DNA of 64,000 nucleotides from Magallana gigas (taxonomy: Eukaryota), in the NCBI RefSeq assembly GCF_963853765.1, contig NC_088860.1, positions 9,672,001-9,736,000 on the forward strand, read 5' to 3'. A program made the translations under genes and the position numbers. This document shows positions 24,303 through 58,395 of the stretch, piece after piece. The first letter of the stretch is position 1; each line of letters starts with the position of its first letter. Under the pieces are notes generated by a model. It saw nothing but the letters and a program-made list of their open reading frames with translations. It searched no databases and was not told the DNA's origin.

Positions 24303-27300
24303 ATGAAGCGAGGGATACTCCTAGTTCTGTTTTGCGGATTTTTATCATACTCCTATGGACAAGGTAATTCAATAAATGCTTAAATTATTGACGAGCTTTA
24401 AAGCTCGTAATCGTTCTCTAAGGTTCAAATTTTTAAATATTTTTCTTCTAGGGAAAAAGTTGTTTTAATGATTTTTTGTTCTAAAATGTTAAATATTTTC
24501 ATTCGTAATTCATATTGATGGTAAAAGATTGGGTTTTTTTAACACTGTATGTTTAGTCTCTAAATAATAAATCAAAACGGCCTTTTGGAAAAAAGCCACT
24601 CGTGTCATTTTTCAAAATGTATGACTTTATTTGTTGATTACTCATTTACGTTTTACATCGAGGAATAATCCTTGATTATTAATTGTTAATTTATTGTTTG
24701 GTTTAAATTTGTGTGATACTTAATATCTTACTTCAAATGATAATATTGTATGTTATATGTTTTCATCTCCAATTCCCCATTGTAATACATAGATAACTAA
24801 GAATCAAGACAAGATTCGCCATTATTCAAAGTACTTTCTTATATTATATTTCCTGTGGGGAAAAATGAAACATTACGCCTGTGATAGCACAAAATGTAAA
24901 TTAAAAACATAATATAGAAAGCTATGTGGTCAGATGATCAAAATTGACAATATATCTATTTGAATTAAAAATTTGTTAACAGTTCCGCTCAAAAGATTCA
25001 TTATATATGCAAATTTAATTTGACCCTGTGGGATGTTTACGTTTTCAAGCTCAAGGAACGATTTGCGTTTTTAAAAAAGTAGACATTTATTTCACTATTT
25101 TTTTACCTATTGACTTTAAAAGTTCAAGGCCATATCATCTTTCTGTATAACCGATAATTTAAAAGGGTATTCAAGAAGTTGTATATATACATGTAGTGTA
25201 TATACACATACGTTTGAAAATACACGTACACACATAGCAGCACGCATACACATGCATATATAAACGCATTACACACCGAAATAGTTTCTCACGCATTGCT
25301 ATTCACTAAGTGTGCTAAATTAAACATTTTTTCATTGTTTAGACTTAAGTGAAAAAAAATATGAGTATTAATTCTTGGAAAGAACAGGTGCAGTTAATCA
25401 TTAAGGACAGTCGCGAAAAATTACAAACTTAACTTTCATAAGTTTGAATAATAATTTTTTTTTCTGGAAAACGACAATGAGTGCAATATACCTTCTAACA
25501 TCTTAAGACAAAGAGGCAGGGCATGTAATAAATAAAAGATGTATTCAAATTGCCTTTGCCACAATACCACTCTGTGTCTTGCGGCGTAATTAATAAAAGA
25601 TGCAAAACAATCGTTCGCTTGATTATTACAGAAACCATTAGTTTTTTTCTCTCATAAGTTTGACACATTTTATAGAATTTTGACAGACTTTGACACACAT
25701 GAAAACGATTGACAAGTGAAGACATCTGCCCCTGATTCGATAGATATATTGCATTTATGACAATACCTTCAGATCAATCCGTAATTTTAATTGCCTAATT
25801 TGAATAATACTAATTAGGAACAATAAGGTTTCAATAAATCACTGTAACTGAAGGTCTCCAACGCCTGTCACGTTTAACAATACATTACTGAGGGAACAAA
25901 ACGCTTTATAAGACAACTTCTCTATGTTTTCACTTTTTTCCCTGTAGGGAGCGATAAACGCATATTATTTCATTTTCTGATACAATAAATAAATGAAAGA
26001 GAACAATGAAACAACAAGAAATCTAAAAAAAAAAGAACACTCTTATTAAAACGCAATTCATGTACAAGTGTTAAAAAAAAATATTCAAAACTTTAGCGCA
26101 TGAACATTAACAAATAGCCAAATAACAACACGACTTATAATGTGACTGGAATAATTAACGAATTTTAATACAAAGAGGCTATATGAGAGGCTTGTCATTT
26201 TATAAAGTATGTTTCAATTTTAATAACAAATAAATCACAATGTCAGTGTTCTCTCTTTAACTACCGAGTAATTTAAAACATTCGTGACATGAAATTTTGA
26301 CCCCCTCCTCACGACAGTGAACACGTGATGTAATTTTGGAACATCTAGACTTGTCTATTCCAATCAGGCCATGATGACGTCATTAGACAATACAGGATTG
26401 ACTTTATACCAACACTGTTTACTTGTATTATTTAATTAAGTCAAATTTCAACTTCCTCGAGATAGTACTGTAACATCGACCCAAATAAGACTCATTCATT
26501 GCCCGATTAAACTAATAACCCATATGTTTTAGCGACCTGAATCAGACATTACTAGTATTAGAATTTTGTTACACATCTGCACTGTTCTTTGCTATCAATA
26601 CACATCCCTGTTTCAGGACCGGAAGGCACACAAGTTGTGCAGGTTCCAGCGGGCACATTCTACGCTCTCGTTTGCCCTGTCCCATCGAATGTGGGAGACA
26701 GAGTCACGTGGTATAAAAATGGCGACATTATATCCGATGCGACCTTTTCTAATTTGATTATATACGATGATTTTATCGGATTTCCAAGTATTAGCGAGTC
26801 TGATAGTGGGGAATACACATGTGCAGTTAATGATGACTTTACGACTGCGCAATCAACTATTATAAACGTTATTGGCACCCAAGGTCCGGGCTCTGCTGGC
26901 CCCGGTCAAGGTAACACTGCACTGTGGTGAAAGAGCTTGAAGGAGCGTTCGAACAGACATTCTTGCTTAGAATTCTACGGTTTCAAGAGAACAATGAAAC
27001 AACAAGAAATCTAAAAAAAACCACTCTTATTAAAACGCAATTCATGTACAAGTGTTAAAAAAATATTCAAAACTTTAGCGCATGAACATTAACAAATAGC
27101 CAAATAACAACACGACTTATAATGTGACTGGAATAATTAACGAATTTTAATACAAAGAGGCTATATGAGAGGCTTGTCATTTTATAAAGTATGTTTCAAT
27201 TTTAATAACAAATAAATCACAATGTCAGTGTTCTCTCTTTAACTACCGAGTAATTTAAAACATTCGTGACATGAAATTTTGACCCCCTCCTCACGACAGT

Positions 27301-30300
27301 GAACACGTGATGTAATTTTGGAACATCTAGACTTGTCTATTCCATACAGGCCATGATGACGTCATTAGACAATACAGGATTGACTTTATACCTACACTGT
27401 TTACTTGTATTATTTAATTAAGTCAAATTTCAACTTCCTCGAGATTGTACTGTAACATCGACCCAAATAAGACTCATTCATTGCCCGATTAAACTAATAA
27501 CCCATATGTTTTAGCGACCTGAATCAGACATTACTAGTATTAGAATTTTGTTACACATCTGCACTGTTCTTTGCTATCAATACACATCCCTGTTTCAGGA
27601 CCGGAAGGCACACAAGTTGTGCAGGTTCCAGCGGGCACACTCTACGATCTCGTTTGCCCTGTCCCATGGAATGTGGGAGACAGAGTCACGTGGTATAAAA
27701 ATGGCGACATTATATCCGATGCGACCTTTTCTAATTTGATTATATACGATAATTTTATCGGATTTCCAAGTATTAGCGAGTCTGATAGTGGGGAATACAC
27801 ATGTGCAGTTAATGATGACTTTACGACTGCGCAATCAACTATTATAAACGTTATTGGCACCCAAGGTCCGGGCTCTGCTGGCCCCGGTCAAGGTAACACT
27901 GCACTGTGGTGAAAGAGCTTGAAGGAGCGTTCGAACAGACATTCTTGCTTAGAATTCTACGGTTTCAGAGAATATTATGTTTCAGTTTGCACCTTAGATG
28001 TGACTTTTTTGAAAGCAATTACTAGTATTTGCACAAAAAGAGGAAAAATCCTTAGCTGTTTCGAAAAGTCTTTGTTTCAGAACACCAGCGCATATCACCG
28101 GGGTTTTAACTACTAACCAATTTTGTCTAATATAACATGTATATGGAGTTGGATTCTCTAGCTTGTTATCAACATTGCACTTATTATTCCATCGCATTTT
28201 CAAGTTTTGAGTGATTGCCTATAAATACTTTGATTATCGTTTATTATCTATTTATTTTCTTAATCTTGTTCTCTCTTCTTCATTTTAAGGGGGAAATTTT
28301 GACAACATGGCAAACGATCCATCTTTACTGATGGAACCAAATCCATCCGGAGGACTTTTACCCCCCAACCCCCCGCCAAAGCCCAAGAAGAGGAAGCAGG
28401 GTCTTCTGGACATGGTTGATACTCCTCCAAGGCCGGTGGACGTGTTGAATAACGAACCACCAGTCGATCTAATCGAGCAACCCATAGGATTACAGGAACA
28501 ACCCATAGGATTACAGGAACAACCAATCGGATTTCTGGATCAGCCCATGGAGATCCCAAACCAACCTATGGGACCAACTAATCAAGAAATGGCAGCGATA
28601 GACCAATCTATGGGACCAGCAATCCAAGATACTATGGGACAAATGGAGATCCCTGTGGAGCCAGTAGAACAGATTGGCGGATTTCTAGATCCACCACCGG
28701 CAGTTCAAAGAGGAAGTAACCCCCAGTTTTCATTGGCTGGATCGGAAGTTGTTAAAGAATGGCTTCCTTCTAATTTTGCTGATAACATACCTTCCTTCGA
28801 CTCAAACCGAATGGTAGAACCCGCACCTGGTACCCAGTCTAAATCAGTAAATCAAATTTTCAACTCTAATTTGGGCTCTGTTCAGGTTGGCGATGCTGGC
28901 ATGGGAAATGTCCCCTCAATGGGAATGTCTATCCCAAGACAACCGATAGTTGACTCGCAGTTCCGGGTGCCTGACAATATGAATATGGACCCTATGGATA
29001 ATGCTGGTGTTCTAGATTTCCAGGAGTTTGGAAACGCTATTGACCTCAAATCAACGGCTGACAAAGGCGCGGAAATGCTTGATATGGCAATGGGCATAGT
29101 AGATAGAGATCCCAATGTAATTCCAGGGAGCCAAAGAAACGAGAAAGAATATACATTTTTTCACGAAACTCAGTGCCGCATGAGAGCCCATTTTACAGCC
29201 GCAGGAAAATTGGACGAAACAACGTATGAAGAATACCTTAATGGAAAGTGGGAACAAAGGCTCTGTGCTCCTGGTTCCGGTTACAACGTCACAACTTGCG
29301 GCTGCACCAATATGCTGCCAGGTAATACATAAAATGATACACATATATTTCTTAAAAAGCCGTATTTTATAAGATCCTCGTGCAAATCAAAGTTTACTTG
29401 TCATTTGACCATAAACTTCTGTAACAAGGCTGTAAATTCCCATCTTTTGTTGTAGTTGGATATAATGCGGGCAGAATGAGGGACGGAGTCTGTACACCAG
29501 ACATCTCTCTTAAGTTCCAAGGGGGCGTGCGTGACACTTCCGGTAACGGGGCCGCGGTCGATTACTACGGTGTTGACGTAGCCGATGGCACGGCGTACTT
29601 TGACGGAAGCAACCGTTTGTACATTTGGAGATACCAAAGTTACGACTACAGGGATAAGTTACAGATCAGCTTTAAATTCAAGCCCAAGCCTGGCCCCAGA
29701 GCAGAGCCCTACACACTGGTCAGCAACTGTGAGGGGGAAGATGAACCATCATATGGCATTGTTCTGAACAGCTTCTCCAACATCACGACCATCTTCTTAA
29801 AGACATACGAAATTGAAAGTCAACGTTTCATGACCTTTGACATTAACGTACGTATTTATTTTTACAGGTATATCAGTAATTGAAAATGAATGGAATATAA
29901 TCATATCTACGAATGTCTGCCAGTAATGAATCGTATGAATAAAGATATTTAATTCAAATGGTAAATTTATACTGCGAGATAATGGATATGATTTTTAAAA
30001 TTCTGAACACGCTGTAGTGCAAGGTTCTAGTCACTGCAGTAACTATTTAATCTCTTTTGCAGCCCACCCAATGGAACGATGTATATTTTAGGTACGAAAA
30101 TGGTACAATGATAGGACGAGTGAACAATGAAATCAAAAGCAGACCTCTGACAGGTAAGTGGCTAAAAACGTGTCTCTCTTAAAATACAGGAAATGGCGCC
30201 AGAATCTCAAAAGTTTTGATTATTTGGGGGTGGGGGGTTGGTTGGTCATGAATGGCTTTTTATTGTTTACGCTATAAATACAGCGAGTCGTTACAATGAA

Positions 30301-31266
30301 TAATAACGTCTTTGTATGTATGTGAATTTATTTGAATGGATCACTTATATTATTCATTTATCTTGGTTGTATTTGACCATTGTTATCACTGATTCTTTTA
30401 ATCTGTGGGGGTTTTTCATTTTGTTTGTCTCTTTGAATTTCTTTGTCGTAGGGGTGATTATTATAGGGAAATACAGTACATTATAACATACAGTGTATTA
30501 AAAAATAGGCATTCTTAGAATTCGTATAATTGATACAACCCTGATTCATTTTTCAAAATCTATGGAATAAAGTAAGTGATTTTTGCAAACATTTAAATTA
30601 ATTCAAAAAACTCTCCAAAGCTTACAACTGTATTTCTTATGATCTATAGGAATCATCCAGAAAAGACCGGATGCCATGGTGTTTGCCAATTGTAAGCGAT
30701 ATGGAAATTTCAAAGGACAGCTAAAAGATGTGAGTAAAAGATTATGTGAAATATTTAGCAACGTTTTATTATAGGAGAAGGCTGGGTTGTCTACAGATTA
30801 ACCTTTAAATCTACCTTAGAGATGTAGGCGTGGTTTCTTTAGCCGTAACATTATTTAGTGAAGAAAAAAACCCTTATTTTTTAGATTTAAAAAATGAATA
30901 CTTTTCTATATCTTCATACAAAGATCTTTTTCTAAGAAGATCAGTATAGTCCAATAATGACCACGACTGTACACCCCTTCTGGTTAAGTTGACTAAGAAT
31001 TAATTTTTTTATCAAAAATCTGAAAAAGAAAAAAAAACCAACTCAGTTCCATCTGATCATTTTGGCTTAAGATATGATATATGTAGTTTAAGTCATTTTT
31101 TAAATTAGAAGCATATCTCTGATTACTTGCAATTGTTTATGATTGAAAAAAGGCTACTCATTTTTAATATGGATATTTTTTTATATTTCAGATCGTAGTT
31201 TACACAAAATGTTTACCTCGTTATGAAAGACCAGTAGAAAGATACCTAAGTGGGGCGGGGCTTTAA
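24303..31266 (+). CDS. Secreted Pif-like shell-matrix-type protein: signal peptide, Ig x2, P/Q/M/D low-complexity region, chitin-binding-like module, LamG (772 aa with both Ig exons)
   Basis: Exons 24303-24363 (MKRGILLVLFCGFLSYSYGQ), 26617-26910, 27599-27892, 28290-29321, 29456-29847, 30063-30153, 30650-30729, 31192-31266 (stop TAA). All GT-AG with phases 1,1,1,1,0,1,0; total 2319 nt. Ig: LVC..W.KNG..D.G.YTC. CBM14-like: C...CAPGSGYNVTTCGC. LamG: AYFDGSNRLYI..LVSNC..WNDV..FKGQLKDIVVY..C.P, the C-terminal pattern of molluscan Pif/BMSP-family proteins. Confidence 0.85.
25998..27967 (+). repeat. ~985-bp tandem duplication carrying the Ig exon
   Basis: Units ~25998-26985 and ~26986-27967 are nearly identical; AGAGAA microhomology at the breakpoints. 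Confidence 0.95.
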
Positions 31267-33205: not shown

Positions 33206-33344
33206 NNNNNNNNNNNNNNNNNNNNNNNNNNNNNNNNNNNNNNNNNNNNNNNNNNNNNNNNNNNNNNNNNNNNNNNNNNNNNNNNNNNNNNNNNNNNNNN
33301 NNNNNNNNNNNNNNNNNNNNNNNNNNNNNNNNNNNNNNNNNNNN
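33206..33344. other. Assembly gap (139 N)
   Basis: Run of N. Confidence 1.
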
Positions 33345-47114: not shown

Positions 47115-47262
47115 NNNNNNNNNNNNNNNNNNNNNNNNNNNNNNNNNNNNNNNNNNNNNNNNNNNNNNNNNNNNNNNNNNNNNNNNNNNNNNNNNNNNNN
47201 NNNNNNNNNNNNNNNNNNNNNNNNNNNNNNNNNNNNNNNNNNNNNNNNNNNNNNNNNNNNNN
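47115..47262. other. Assembly gap (148 N)
   Basis: Run of N. Confidence 1.
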
Positions 47263-56850: not shown

Positions 56851-57627
56851 GTAAGTTGTGTAGTAATCTAAGTAGAGTCTGTTACGTCAGAAGTGTTTTT
56901 TTTTAAAAGATAAAATACATAGTGTAATACCTTATTCTGATACATACACGTTTTAGCACAGGGACATTTCCACCCAACAGCCCAAGACACGAACATTGAT
57001 ACTGCTAATGTAAACAGCTGGTAAATAATAATACAGTACGTAGGCCTAATGACGTAATTATTTAAAGTACAATTAAATGAAAGTGAATATTTTAATGAAT
57101 GTGAAGAGTGACAGACACATACATGCAGTAGCAAGTTTTCATCCTTTGAGGGGGTACACGTAAGTCAAAATCTTATATACAGAGGCACATCCCCCCTTAT
57201 TTAAACTACTTTTTAAAATACAAAATGGGTAATATATATACAACTCTATTGTCATATGTTTCATTTAGAAGTAAATTCATCCCATTTCTCATTTGTTCAG
57301 ATCTTTGCATGGGATGTTTTAGAGGAAGTGTCTTAATTTTCTTTATACTCATATCTGAATGTTGGGTTCTGTTGAGATTTTTCCATATCAGCCATATAAA
57401 TACTTTAACTTATATGGTTACTACATGTACATGAATAAATCTTGATTTGAATGTTTTTAAAAAGATCAATCAGGTTTTGTTTTGTATATTTTTTAAAATC
57501 AAAATGGAGAAGAGTTGAAACAGAAACATGCATTTATATATATACATGTATAACTTACAGAAAACTGAGAAAAGGGTTATGTATACAAAATTTCGGTCAT
57601 TTTTTTTAGCAGTCGAAAGAAAAAGTG

Positions 57628-58395
57628 ATGGACCTGTTAACCTTGATCAAGAAGAAGTCATCGCCCCTTAAAAAGCTGGAAATTGCCATTGAAGAGAACA
57701 ACATCAAGGAACTCAAAGAAGTGCTAGAAAGTGGTGAGGTGGATCCAAACACCGAAATACAGAAACACGGAGGGAACTGTGCTGTACACATTGCCGCGCA
57801 TAAAGGCTTATTTCTCTGTGTAGAAACTTTGTTGGAGTATGGTGCAGACCCTGACAAAACCAACCATTTCAACCTAACACCCCTTTACATTGCACTCAGG
57901 AGAAACTATGCAAAATGTGTGGAGATTCTTTTACGAGTAAACCGAGTGCTTATGAGTATAGACCCGGTTTGGATGCAGATGGATAATGCTCAGAGAGTAT
58001 GGAATGATGCTAAAGATATCATGATTTGTGTCTTGGTAAAAGCCACACCAAACTTAATGAGATGCAGGAGTAACACAAGGAGTAATTTATTCTTTCTGTG
58101 TAAAAACAAAAGTATGTACGGTAGCCTGCGTGCTATGACAATTGCTGGATATAAATTTAGTGATGAAGAAAAAACCCACTTTATGAAGTCATCTGTTGAA
58201 GGAGACAAGTCTTTTTATGAATGGTTAGACAATTATCAAAAACGGCCTCAACAATTAATGCATTACTGTAGATTAACAATACGCCATAGTTTTTGTGGCA
58301 ATTGTAATGTGTTCTATGGTGTTGAGCAGTTAAAAATCCCTCCCCTTCTTAAGAACTATATTAAAATACAGGATATCAATGAAATTGATGAATGA
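57628..58395 (+). CDS. Ankyrin repeat and SOCS box protein (ASB-like), 255 aa, single coding exon
   Basis: Ankyrin repeats GNCAVHIAAHKG...VETLLEYGADPD and TPLYIALRRNYAKCVEILL; C-terminal SOCS box PQQLMHYCRLTIR...VEQLKIPPLLKNYI. Confidence 0.92.
   Translation: MDLLTLIKKKSSPLKKLEIAIEENNIKELKEVLESGEVDPNTEIQKHGGNCAVHIAAHKGLFLCVETLLEYGADPDKTNHFNLTPLYIALRRNYAKCVEILLRVNRVLMSIDPVWMQMDNAQRVWNDAKDIMICVLVKATPNLMRCRSNTRSNLFFLCKNKSMYGSLRAMTIAGYKFSDEEKTHFMKSSVEGDKSFYEWLDNYQKRPQQLMHYCRLTIRHSFCGNCNVFYGVEQLKIPPLLKNYIKIQDINEIDE

Follow-up and report, generated by a model that had tools for sequence, protein, structure and literature searches.

The asparagine-rich protein gene of Crassostrea gigas: an optional Ig cassette in a probable vWA-less relative of the Pif/BMSP shell-matrix proteins

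The proteins of the Pif/BMSP family carry VWA, chitin-binding (CB) and LG (laminin G) domains; the LG parts belong to Pif80, an aragonite binder (PMC11291548, PMC7747718). LG-domain proteins are present in the shell proteomes of Pinctada, C. gigas, Mytilus and Lottia (PMC4660305, PMC4517812). A second family of interest here is that of the ‘asparagine-rich protein’ (NRP), whose founder is the Pinctada margaritifera protein UniProt H2A0M0 (P0067 in our searches), recorded as ‘Asparagine-rich protein / Prism uncharacterized shell protein’. In this study we consider a split gene on the + strand, at positions 24303-31266 of a 64-kb stretch of the C. gigas (Magallana gigas) genome (NC_088860.1, contig 8, 9,672,001-9,736,000; hereafter the window), which an earlier note, made from the sequence alone, had described as a complete eight-exon, Pif-like gene with two immunoglobulin (Ig) domains in place of vWA. 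We find that the locus is the sole C. gigas gene of the NRP family and is already annotated, and that in place of the complete eight-exon form there are normally seven exons, of which the Ig exon is an optional cassette. The composite picture developed below, of an NRP gene with an optional Ig cassette, an assembly-specific duplication of that cassette, and a role of the product in the shell or chitin matrix, is in our judgment probably correct as a whole.

The gene was identified by a phmmer search with exon 5 against 1.84 billion representative sequences, which gave 83 matches, together with a follow-up search and cluster look-ups. Its RefSeq identity is XP_011434902.1, ‘asparagine-rich protein isoform X2 [Crassostrea gigas]’, a protein of 576 amino acids (aa; P0088), and a second full-length protein came from a Logan transcript (P0085). 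Window exons 1, 4, 5, 6, 7 and 8 are colinear with P0085 and P0088, at 95-100% identity per exon. These two database proteins, not the window's own allele, were used for all whole-protein analyses, and the window exons were searched singly. The 564-Mb C. gigas genome holds a single close copy of the gene, on contig 8.

The frame of the gene is open, every intron is GT..AG and all proposed splice sites are canonical. Four RNA runs from four studies were aligned on 24200-30199: X13, recorded as RNA; X24, poly-A raw reads; and X7 and X11, which are predicted to be RNA. First mates were confined to the − strand, the pattern of a stranded library for + strand RNA. Transcript contigs start at 24218-24230 (an X7 piece covers 24218-24363 and an X13 piece 24230-24364), from which we take 24218-24302 as the 5′ untranslated region (UTR) and exon 1 (24303-24363) as the first coding exon. 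Exon 1 supplies the start codon and a signal-peptide-like N-terminus, MKRGILLVLFCGFLSYSYG followed by Q, and ends in phase 1; its translation is MKRGILLVLFCGFLSYSYGQ, the signal-peptide shape was judged by inspection, and this N-terminus is conserved among the orthologues.

From exon 1 the RNA takes one of two paths. The join to exon 4 has a depth of 174.8 in X13 and 56.9 in X7, with three reads in X24; the join to exon 3, an Ig exon of 294 nucleotides (nt) and phase 1-1 at 27599-27892 (Pfam Ig_2, 4.5e-9), has a depth of 125.6 in X13 and 35.8 in X7, with five reads in X24; and the join from exon 3 to exon 4 has a depth of 35.8 in X7 and two reads in X24. One X7 contig spans exons 1, 3 and 4. 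Thus the mRNAs carry zero or one Ig domain, in amounts of the same order by join counts and with the Ig form a minority by depth, and since exon 3 begins and ends in phase 1, its inclusion or skipping leaves the frame intact and yields one-Ig and Ig-less isoforms. For C. gigas, the evidence for the one-Ig isoform consists of these joins and of the single contig through exons 1, 3 and 4. Exon 3 is skipped in a large share of transcripts, a result that the earlier note had itself named as one that would speak against its proposal. The downstream joins follow the same gene structure. Exon 4 (28290-29321, 1032 nt, phase 1-1) is joined to exon 5 (29456-29847), and exon 5 to exon 6 (30063-30153, by the join 29847 to 30063), in all four runs; loose ends at 30154 lead from exon 6 into exon 7 (30650-30729), their consensus being the start of exon 7. 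Exon 8 (31192-31266) carries the end of the LG domain, a short tail and the stop codon TAA, and is colinear with residues 553-576 of P0085/P0088. No vWA exon is found: with exon 1 spliced straight to exon 3 or exon 4 and nothing between them in the mRNA, there is no place for one in the transcripts, and tblastn searches of the 64-kb window with eight VWA and four CBM_14 domains of relatives returned only noise (VWA E ≥ 1). In this last respect the earlier prediction was borne out.

Three minor features of the RNA alignments may be mentioned here. Within intron 1, the stretch 24992-26156 has low RNA depth on the gene strand (about 5 in X13 contigs, 1-7 in X24 raw reads), with no joins and 13 mismatches in 843; unspliced pre-mRNA, a retained intron or reads of a repeat elsewhere could each account for it. 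One X13 contig carries 30 letters foreign to the window ahead of 24230, with no AG acceptor there; possible sources are an indel allele, an artefact of the assembly graph and an alternative 5′ UTR exon. Lastly, at 28068 in intron 3 an X7 contig and 5/5 X24 reads have a six-base insertion, TCGTGA, which is an indel polymorphism of the ordinary intronic kind.

The eighth exon of the earlier proposal is exon 2 (26617-26910), a second Ig exon, also of 294 nt and phase 1-1 (Pfam Ig_2, 5e-10). It lies in the first of two tandem units, each composed of intron sequence plus one Ig exon: copy 1 (25997-26984) with exon 2, and copy 2 (26985-27966) with exon 3. By blastn the two units are 98.4-98.5% identical, with nine mismatches and a few indels, and the 982-bp unit occurs in these two copies only in the whole 564-Mb genome, on which ground a transposon origin was rejected. 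Both Ig exons are intact, with an open frame and identical canonical splice sites, and both exceed the Ig_2 cut-off of 27 bits (39.9 bits for exon 2, 36.8 bits for exon 3); the Pfam families I-set and ig also score above cut-off in both. The RNA and the DNA of other individuals both argue against a native protein with two Ig domains. No run contains a join into or out of exon 2, nor one from exon 2 to exon 3, and the X24 raw-read depth over exon 2 is about 0.5, the level of the intron, compared to 10.5 over exon 3 and about 35 over exon 4. As for the DNA, many Logan DNA contigs carry a 135-aa product called from exon 5 (P0089), and ten of them were taken (L002-L011; ten samples, 7-9 kb each). 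All ten aligned to the window to the left and to the right of the duplication, and in each of them about 980 bases matched copy 1 as well as copy 2, so that each contains a single unit. The exons 2 and 3 differ at four sites, and at these diagnostic sites 10/10 contigs have the letters of exon 3 and 0/10 those of exon 2. We conclude that the order ‘Ig, Ig’ is specific to this assembly or haplotype and is not the native form. Of the complete eight-exon gene proposed earlier there remains a real, transcribed and canonically spliced gene, but one of seven exons.

The duplication itself is either a rare or private structural variant or two alleles placed in tandem by the assembler. Let us consider first that it is a real variant of the sequenced individual or haplotype, arising, for example, by unequal crossing-over of diverged alleles, in which case a two-Ig protein would be possible there. 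The two copies differ by the mismatches and indels given above while both keep the open frame and the splice sites, and the letters of exon 2 at the diagnostic sites (T, C, C, G) were never seen as an allele in the ten other contigs. The assembly consists of 29 contigs and is probably long-read based. False tandem duplications are less usual in long-read assemblies. On the other side, the ten contigs are 96.4-98.3% identical to the window, so that the divergence between the two units, at 98.4% identity, is no greater than ordinary allelic divergence, as would be expected for alleles laid in tandem; and exon 2 is present in the RNA of no run, although for none of the runs or contigs is an origin in the assembled individual known. 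We regard a real structural variant as a serious possibility, its chances falling somewhat short of even.

All four differences between exons 2 and 3 are replacements (F/L, A/D, S/W, D/N), which is unremarkable alone because about three quarters of random changes are replacements. At three of these sites the replacement in exon 2 is derived (A16, S23, D51), C. virginica and O. edulis matching exon 3 there. The comparison widens when the variable sites of the window and the ten contigs are taken together: those of the Ig exon are 8 replacement and 2 silent, those of exons 4-8 3 replacement and 13 silent (Fisher p = 0.004, or p = 0.054 without the four exon 2-specific sites, in a small and biased sample). 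Further replacement variants of exon 3 were seen in the RNA reads (I>L, Y>H, T>I, T>A and T>M). This replacement-biased variation of the Ig exon could reflect relaxed constraint or diversifying selection.

The remainder of the protein is encoded by exons 4-8, on which Pfam recognised no domain, either exon by exon or on P0085/P0088; we took a sub-threshold match of exon 5 to the Pfam CATSPERD Ig-like family (E 0.13) as noise. The last part of exon 4 (29162-29314) encodes a 51-residue Cys module that resembles a reduced CBM14 (peritrophin-A type) module, in which four of the six canonical cysteines are kept. The canonical CBM_14 family gave no Pfam match on exon 4 even at E ≤ 10. Against the true CBM_14 domains of Pif/BMSP relatives, profile-profile alignment (hhalign) gave a probability of 95.8% and an E value of 6.7e-9. 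When the module alone was modelled with AlphaFold2 (AF2), the mean confidence (pLDDT, predicted local distance difference test) was 86, and 16 matches at Z ≥ 2 were obtained among 48,161 chains compared. The eight best of these 16 are all CBM14-type chitin binders, with Z of 3.1-5.6: Der p 23, Aplysia EHEP, two Avr4 proteins, Blo t 12, the chitotriosidase CBM14, Der f 23 and tachycitin. The template-modelling (TM) score against the CBM14 of CHIT1 is 0.62. An alignment of 39 sequences from the Cys module to the C-terminal end (A1), used as a profile against PDB sequences, gave only matches at E ≥ 0.28, including a weak one to squid chitin-binding beak protein 3 at E 0.28.

Exon 5 begins with a linker that holds a conserved Cys and continues into the first half of a jelly roll of the LG/concanavalin-like type, which exons 6 and 7 continue and exon 8 completes (29485-31242, residues 375-569 of P0085). 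The AF2 model of P0085 residues 300-576, made from alignment A1, has a pLDDT of 89 and a predicted TM score (pTM) of 0.80, with the jelly roll at model residues 76-270. Compared by fold, this domain is closest to domain 4 of AbnA, which is arabinan-binding (VIA Z 17.9, root-mean-square deviation (rmsd) 3.1 over 183 residues), followed by the sialic-acid-binding CBM40 (Z 14-15) and by the LG domains of laminin, neurexin and agrin (Z 13-14), all superpositions extending over 139-186 residues; laminin alpha1 LG4-5 and neurexin LNS4 gave Z 14.2-14.3 with rmsd 2.6-2.8 over 139-144 residues. Foldseek returned more than 500 matches to the LG model at E ≤ 0.001. The top of its list is occupied by the N-terminal jelly-roll sub-domain of clostridial neurotoxin binding domains, but a toxin reading was rejected: the identity is 12-19%, only the concanavalin-like fold is shared, and carbohydrate-binding modules score as well against the model. 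Pfam Laminin_G_3 had no match on P0085 or P0088 at E ≤ 1; among the relatives it scores 19.8-28.3 bits against a cut-off of 27.6, and only a Mytilus protein (P0009) passes. A feature search of the ESM Atlas with exon 5 gave only weak Laminin_G_3/sialidase leads (0.87-0.90). Taken together, the models and profiles show that the Cys module and the LG-like domain are real, though visible only to profile and fold methods. The order of low-complexity region, Cys module and LamG proposed in the earlier note thus holds.

This C-terminal unit places the gene among its relatives. With exon 5 alone, phmmer matched proteins with VWA and CBM_14 (and in part Laminin_G_3) at E values of 1e-13 to 1e-7, including 1.7e-13 to a Lottia protein with three VWA domains and CBM_14, and 8.7e-12 to a Solemya protein with VWA, CBM_14 and Laminin_G_3. 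With the longer query of the CB-like module plus LG, the matches to Pif/BMSP-type proteins went down to about 1e-39. The kinship with Pif/BMSP proposed earlier is therefore well founded: the CB-like module and LG domain are homologous to the CB-LG region of the Pif/BMSP proteins. Pfam analysis of the full-length matches separates two kinds. The first, of Pif/BMSP type, is marked by VWA and/or canonical CBM_14, to which Sushi repeats are sometimes added; the second has neither VWA nor CBM_14 and comprises proteins of Crassostrea, Ostrea, Saccostrea, Mytilus, Dreissena, Argopecten and Tegillarca as well as the Pinctada founder. In a maximum-likelihood tree of the CB-like plus LG unit, 13 vWA-less sequences fall on one side of a branch with support 99/98 and all sequences with VWA or CBM_14 fall on the opposite side; the branch is found in 100% of 200 bootstrap trees, the tree being unrooted, so that the word ‘clade’ depends on the position of the root. 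On these sequence comparisons, NRP would be a vWA-less sister branch of Pif/BMSP that extends across the bivalves.

It is this branch that bears most directly on the idea of Ig domains standing in place of vWA. Since vWA-less and Ig-less relatives share the branch of the oyster gene, the absence of vWA is old and the Ig domain is a later, oyster-only addition; the Ig exon does not substitute for a vWA domain in this lineage. The proposal of a native two-Ig, Pif-like protein in which a shuffled Ig exon has replaced vWA in an undescribed architecture has in its favor the two intact, phase 1-1 Ig exons with identical canonical splice sites, the homology of the LG and CB-like parts to Pif/BMSP and the absence of vWA from the window. 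Against it stand the lack of exon 2 joins in the RNA, the single-copy unit in ten other individuals, the vWA-less, Ig-less relatives across bivalves on the same branch, and the isoforms already present in RefSeq. We consider it very unlikely.

Compared with Pif/BMSP proteins, the oyster NRP is likewise secreted and likewise contains low-complexity regions and homologous pre-LG and LG parts, and the N- and C-terminal blocks of the Pif/BMSP LG domain (AYFNG... and W..V...G...G...F.G..D.V.IY; PMC11291548) are recognisable in oyster exons 5-8. Pif/BMSP proteins carry a reduced CBM14-like module as well as the canonical CBM_14. The oyster protein differs in having no vWA and no canonical CBM_14, in its separate branch of the tree and in its optional Ig cassette. 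In addition, the LG domain of most Pif/BMSP proteins is split by a long insert (PMC11291548) whereas that of the oyster is unsplit, and the low-complexity region of the oyster lies ahead of the CB-like module, not inside LG as in Pif/BMSP.

The founder H2A0M0, which is the RefSeq namesake of the oyster gene, shares with it the signal peptide, a long low-complexity region, a four-Cys CBM14-like module, an uninterrupted LG domain and the lack of vWA, and it lies on the same side of the 99/98 branch of the LG tree; its shell location is known from the name of the record only. It differs in having no Ig domain and in being only 29% identical over the CB-like plus LG unit. The low-complexity regions differ as well. 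In the oyster this region is the first part of exon 4 (28290-29161) and forms a disordered acidic stretch of about 285 residues (isoelectric point (pI) 4.1), rich in proline, glycine, asparagine, glutamine and methionine and also in aspartate; in Pinctada it is basic (pI 10.5) and Asn/Ser-rich. The two share the motifs (L/M)EPNP and V(V/L)x(E/K)(W/F)LPxN, two short stretches conserved in the family and present in other oysters too (the second reads VVKEWLPSNF in the oyster), and are otherwise unalignable. Asparagine makes up 8.1% of the oyster region, where it is the third commonest residue, compared to 13.9% in Pinctada; the name ‘asparagine-rich’ describes the founder and not the family.

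The Ig cassette is present in other oysters as well. RefSeq annotates an isoform pair in two species: C. virginica LOC111136686 with X1 of 659 aa carrying one Ig and X2 of 563 aa without it, and O. edulis with X1 of 629 aa carrying it and X2 of 529 aa without. The proteins of Saccostrea echinata (686 aa, locus L001) and S. cucullata (P0129, 702 aa) have one Ig each on the same exon plan. The search with the Ig region of P0084 matched Saccostrea only; the X1 isoforms came to light when the members of the 90%-identity clusters that contain them were listed. Across the four genera the cassette is 51-80% identical, with an invariant core VCP...VTWYKN...GFPSI.ESD.G.YTC, within which the Cys...W...Cys core VCPV...VTWYK...YTCAV is invariant among the oysters. 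The CB-like plus LG unit of these orthologues is 58-85% identical to that of the window gene, and none of them has two Ig domains. With a RefSeq gene in C. gigas and one-Ig/Ig-less pairs in two further oysters, the idea of an unusual or undescribed architecture is not supported. Among the non-oyster NRP-like proteins scanned, none has an Ig domain. The oysters thus added the Ig cassette to a scaffold that was already without vWA.

Other lineages have other modules at the same position. The Argopecten irradians ‘asparagine-rich protein-like’ has an EGF-like module where the oysters have Ig, present in X1 and absent from X2, although its score of 19.2 bits lies below the cut-off of 21.5. In C. 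virginica, the lineage-specific paralogues LOC111137249 and LOC111137251 (P0001, P0004, P0101, P0102) have the order ShK, Thr/Ser-rich repeats, ShK, LG; here too a small disulfide-rich module follows the signal peptide, and ShK together with tandem repeats of about 30 residues, rich in Thr/Ser, replaces the low-complexity region and the CBM14-like module. The LG domain of these paralogues is 77% identical to that of the window, they nest beside the C. virginica NRP, and the C. gigas genome contains no counterpart of them. In P0001 a segment of an LG strand is also repeated internally, perhaps through an error of the gene model. It thus looks as though the site after the signal peptide is a slot open to small disulfide-rich modules. 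A phase 1-1 Ig exon and different modules in different lineages fit exon shuffling, so that this part of the earlier proposal stands once it is separated from the notion of a substitute for vWA. As to the source of the Ig exon, an origin from the Ig receptor gene next to the NRP gene was rejected, there being no similarity inside the window, and no donor was found in the genome, where identity to other Ig exons does not exceed 39% and the best of these mostly lie in a cluster on another contig.

One might go further and imagine a phase-1 ‘adaptor slot’, filled independently by Ig in oysters, by an EGF-like module in scallops and by ShK in the C. virginica paralogues, with splicing regulating its use and switching binding partners between shell layers or life stages. 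We hold this extension to be doubtful and offer it only tentatively. If it were true, the replacement-biased variation of the Ig cassette would represent selection on an interaction interface.

What the protein might do can be sketched from its relatives, and our consideration of the mechanism is conditional throughout. Mantle cells would secrete the protein; the CBM14-like plus LG unit would anchor it to chitin or another polysaccharide of the organic framework of the shell, by analogy with the roles proposed for the CB and LG parts of Pif/BMSP (PMC11291548); the acidic disordered region might serve as a spacer or face the mineral; and a site of protein-protein contact would come and go with the spliced Ig cassette. 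By analogy, then, we infer a role in the shell or chitin matrix, to which the prism-shell name of the Pinctada founder and the LG-domain proteins of several shell proteomes point, and a C. gigas gene named ‘asparagine-rich protein’ is part of a mantle-biased module (PMC13664851).

An alternative is that the product does not belong to the shell matrix and acts instead, once secreted, as a lectin of recognition or immunity or as a general extracellular-matrix protein, with Ig and carbohydrate-type folds that would recognise glycans, whether foreign or self. By fold, the LG domain comes closest to carbohydrate-binding jelly rolls, namely the arabinan-binding domain and CBM40, CBM14-type folds also occur in chitin binders outside the shell, the variation of the Ig exon is mostly replacement (8:2, compared to 3:13 in exons 4-8), and the gene adjoins an Ig receptor gene. 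Weighed against these are the UniProt name of the founder, a closest outgroup that is the Pif/BMSP shell family, and the mantle bias of a C. gigas gene of this name, while the replacement bias concerns few sites in a biased sample. On this balance we think the lectin or general matrix role unlikely.

Several observations count against the composite picture of a shell-matrix NRP gene with a single native Ig cassette, and these should be kept in view. Literature searches found no shell-proteome paper naming the oyster protein and no direct placement of it in the shell, the tissues of the RNA runs are given in coded form, and the link to the mantle module is by gene name and not by accession. Pfam recognises neither LG nor CBM_14 in the C. 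gigas protein itself, and with four of six cysteines the reduced CBM14-like module may have lost chitin binding. The low-complexity region has a pI of 4.1 here, 10.5 in Pinctada and 9.8 in Mytilus; its charge differs among lineages, and conservation is thus lacking in the very stretch that would be likely to face mineral. As for the single Ig unit, the ten DNA contigs were chosen via one identical exon 5 product and are a biased sample of haplotypes, and contigs from short reads cannot wholly exclude a collapsed repeat, although a collapse would normally break the contigs.

New here are the explicit link between NRP and Pif/BMSP through the CBM14-like plus LG unit, the conservation of the Ig cassette in four oyster genera with an annotated X1/X2 pair in two, the variable N-terminal slot and the recognition of the duplication in this assembly. 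For shell biology, the first ties a poorly characterised family to a well-studied one, and the conserved, alternatively spliced oyster cassette offers a concrete case of module shuffling combined with splicing in a matrix protein. For annotation, the 982-bp duplication is a caution, as it would yield a two-Ig protein model unsupported by RNA and by other individuals. These results refine current views and overturn none.

The surroundings of the gene in the window contribute a few minor observations. Upstream, an open reading frame (ORF) on the − strand at 15390-16199 carries HTH_Tnp_4 and DDE_Tnp_4 (4e-17), as in a Harbinger/PIF-type transposase, and near it, at 18604-18963 on the − strand, is a frame with a THAP domain (2.5e-7), a transposon-derived insertion. 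Two runs of N lie outside the gene, at 33206-33344 (139 bases) and 47115-47262 (148 bases). Downstream, a single long exon on the + strand at 57625-58392 encodes ankyrin repeats (Ank_2, 3.2e-11) followed by a SOCS_box (1.5e-9), an ASB-type gene, so that the NRP gene does not sit in a cluster of shell-matrix genes.

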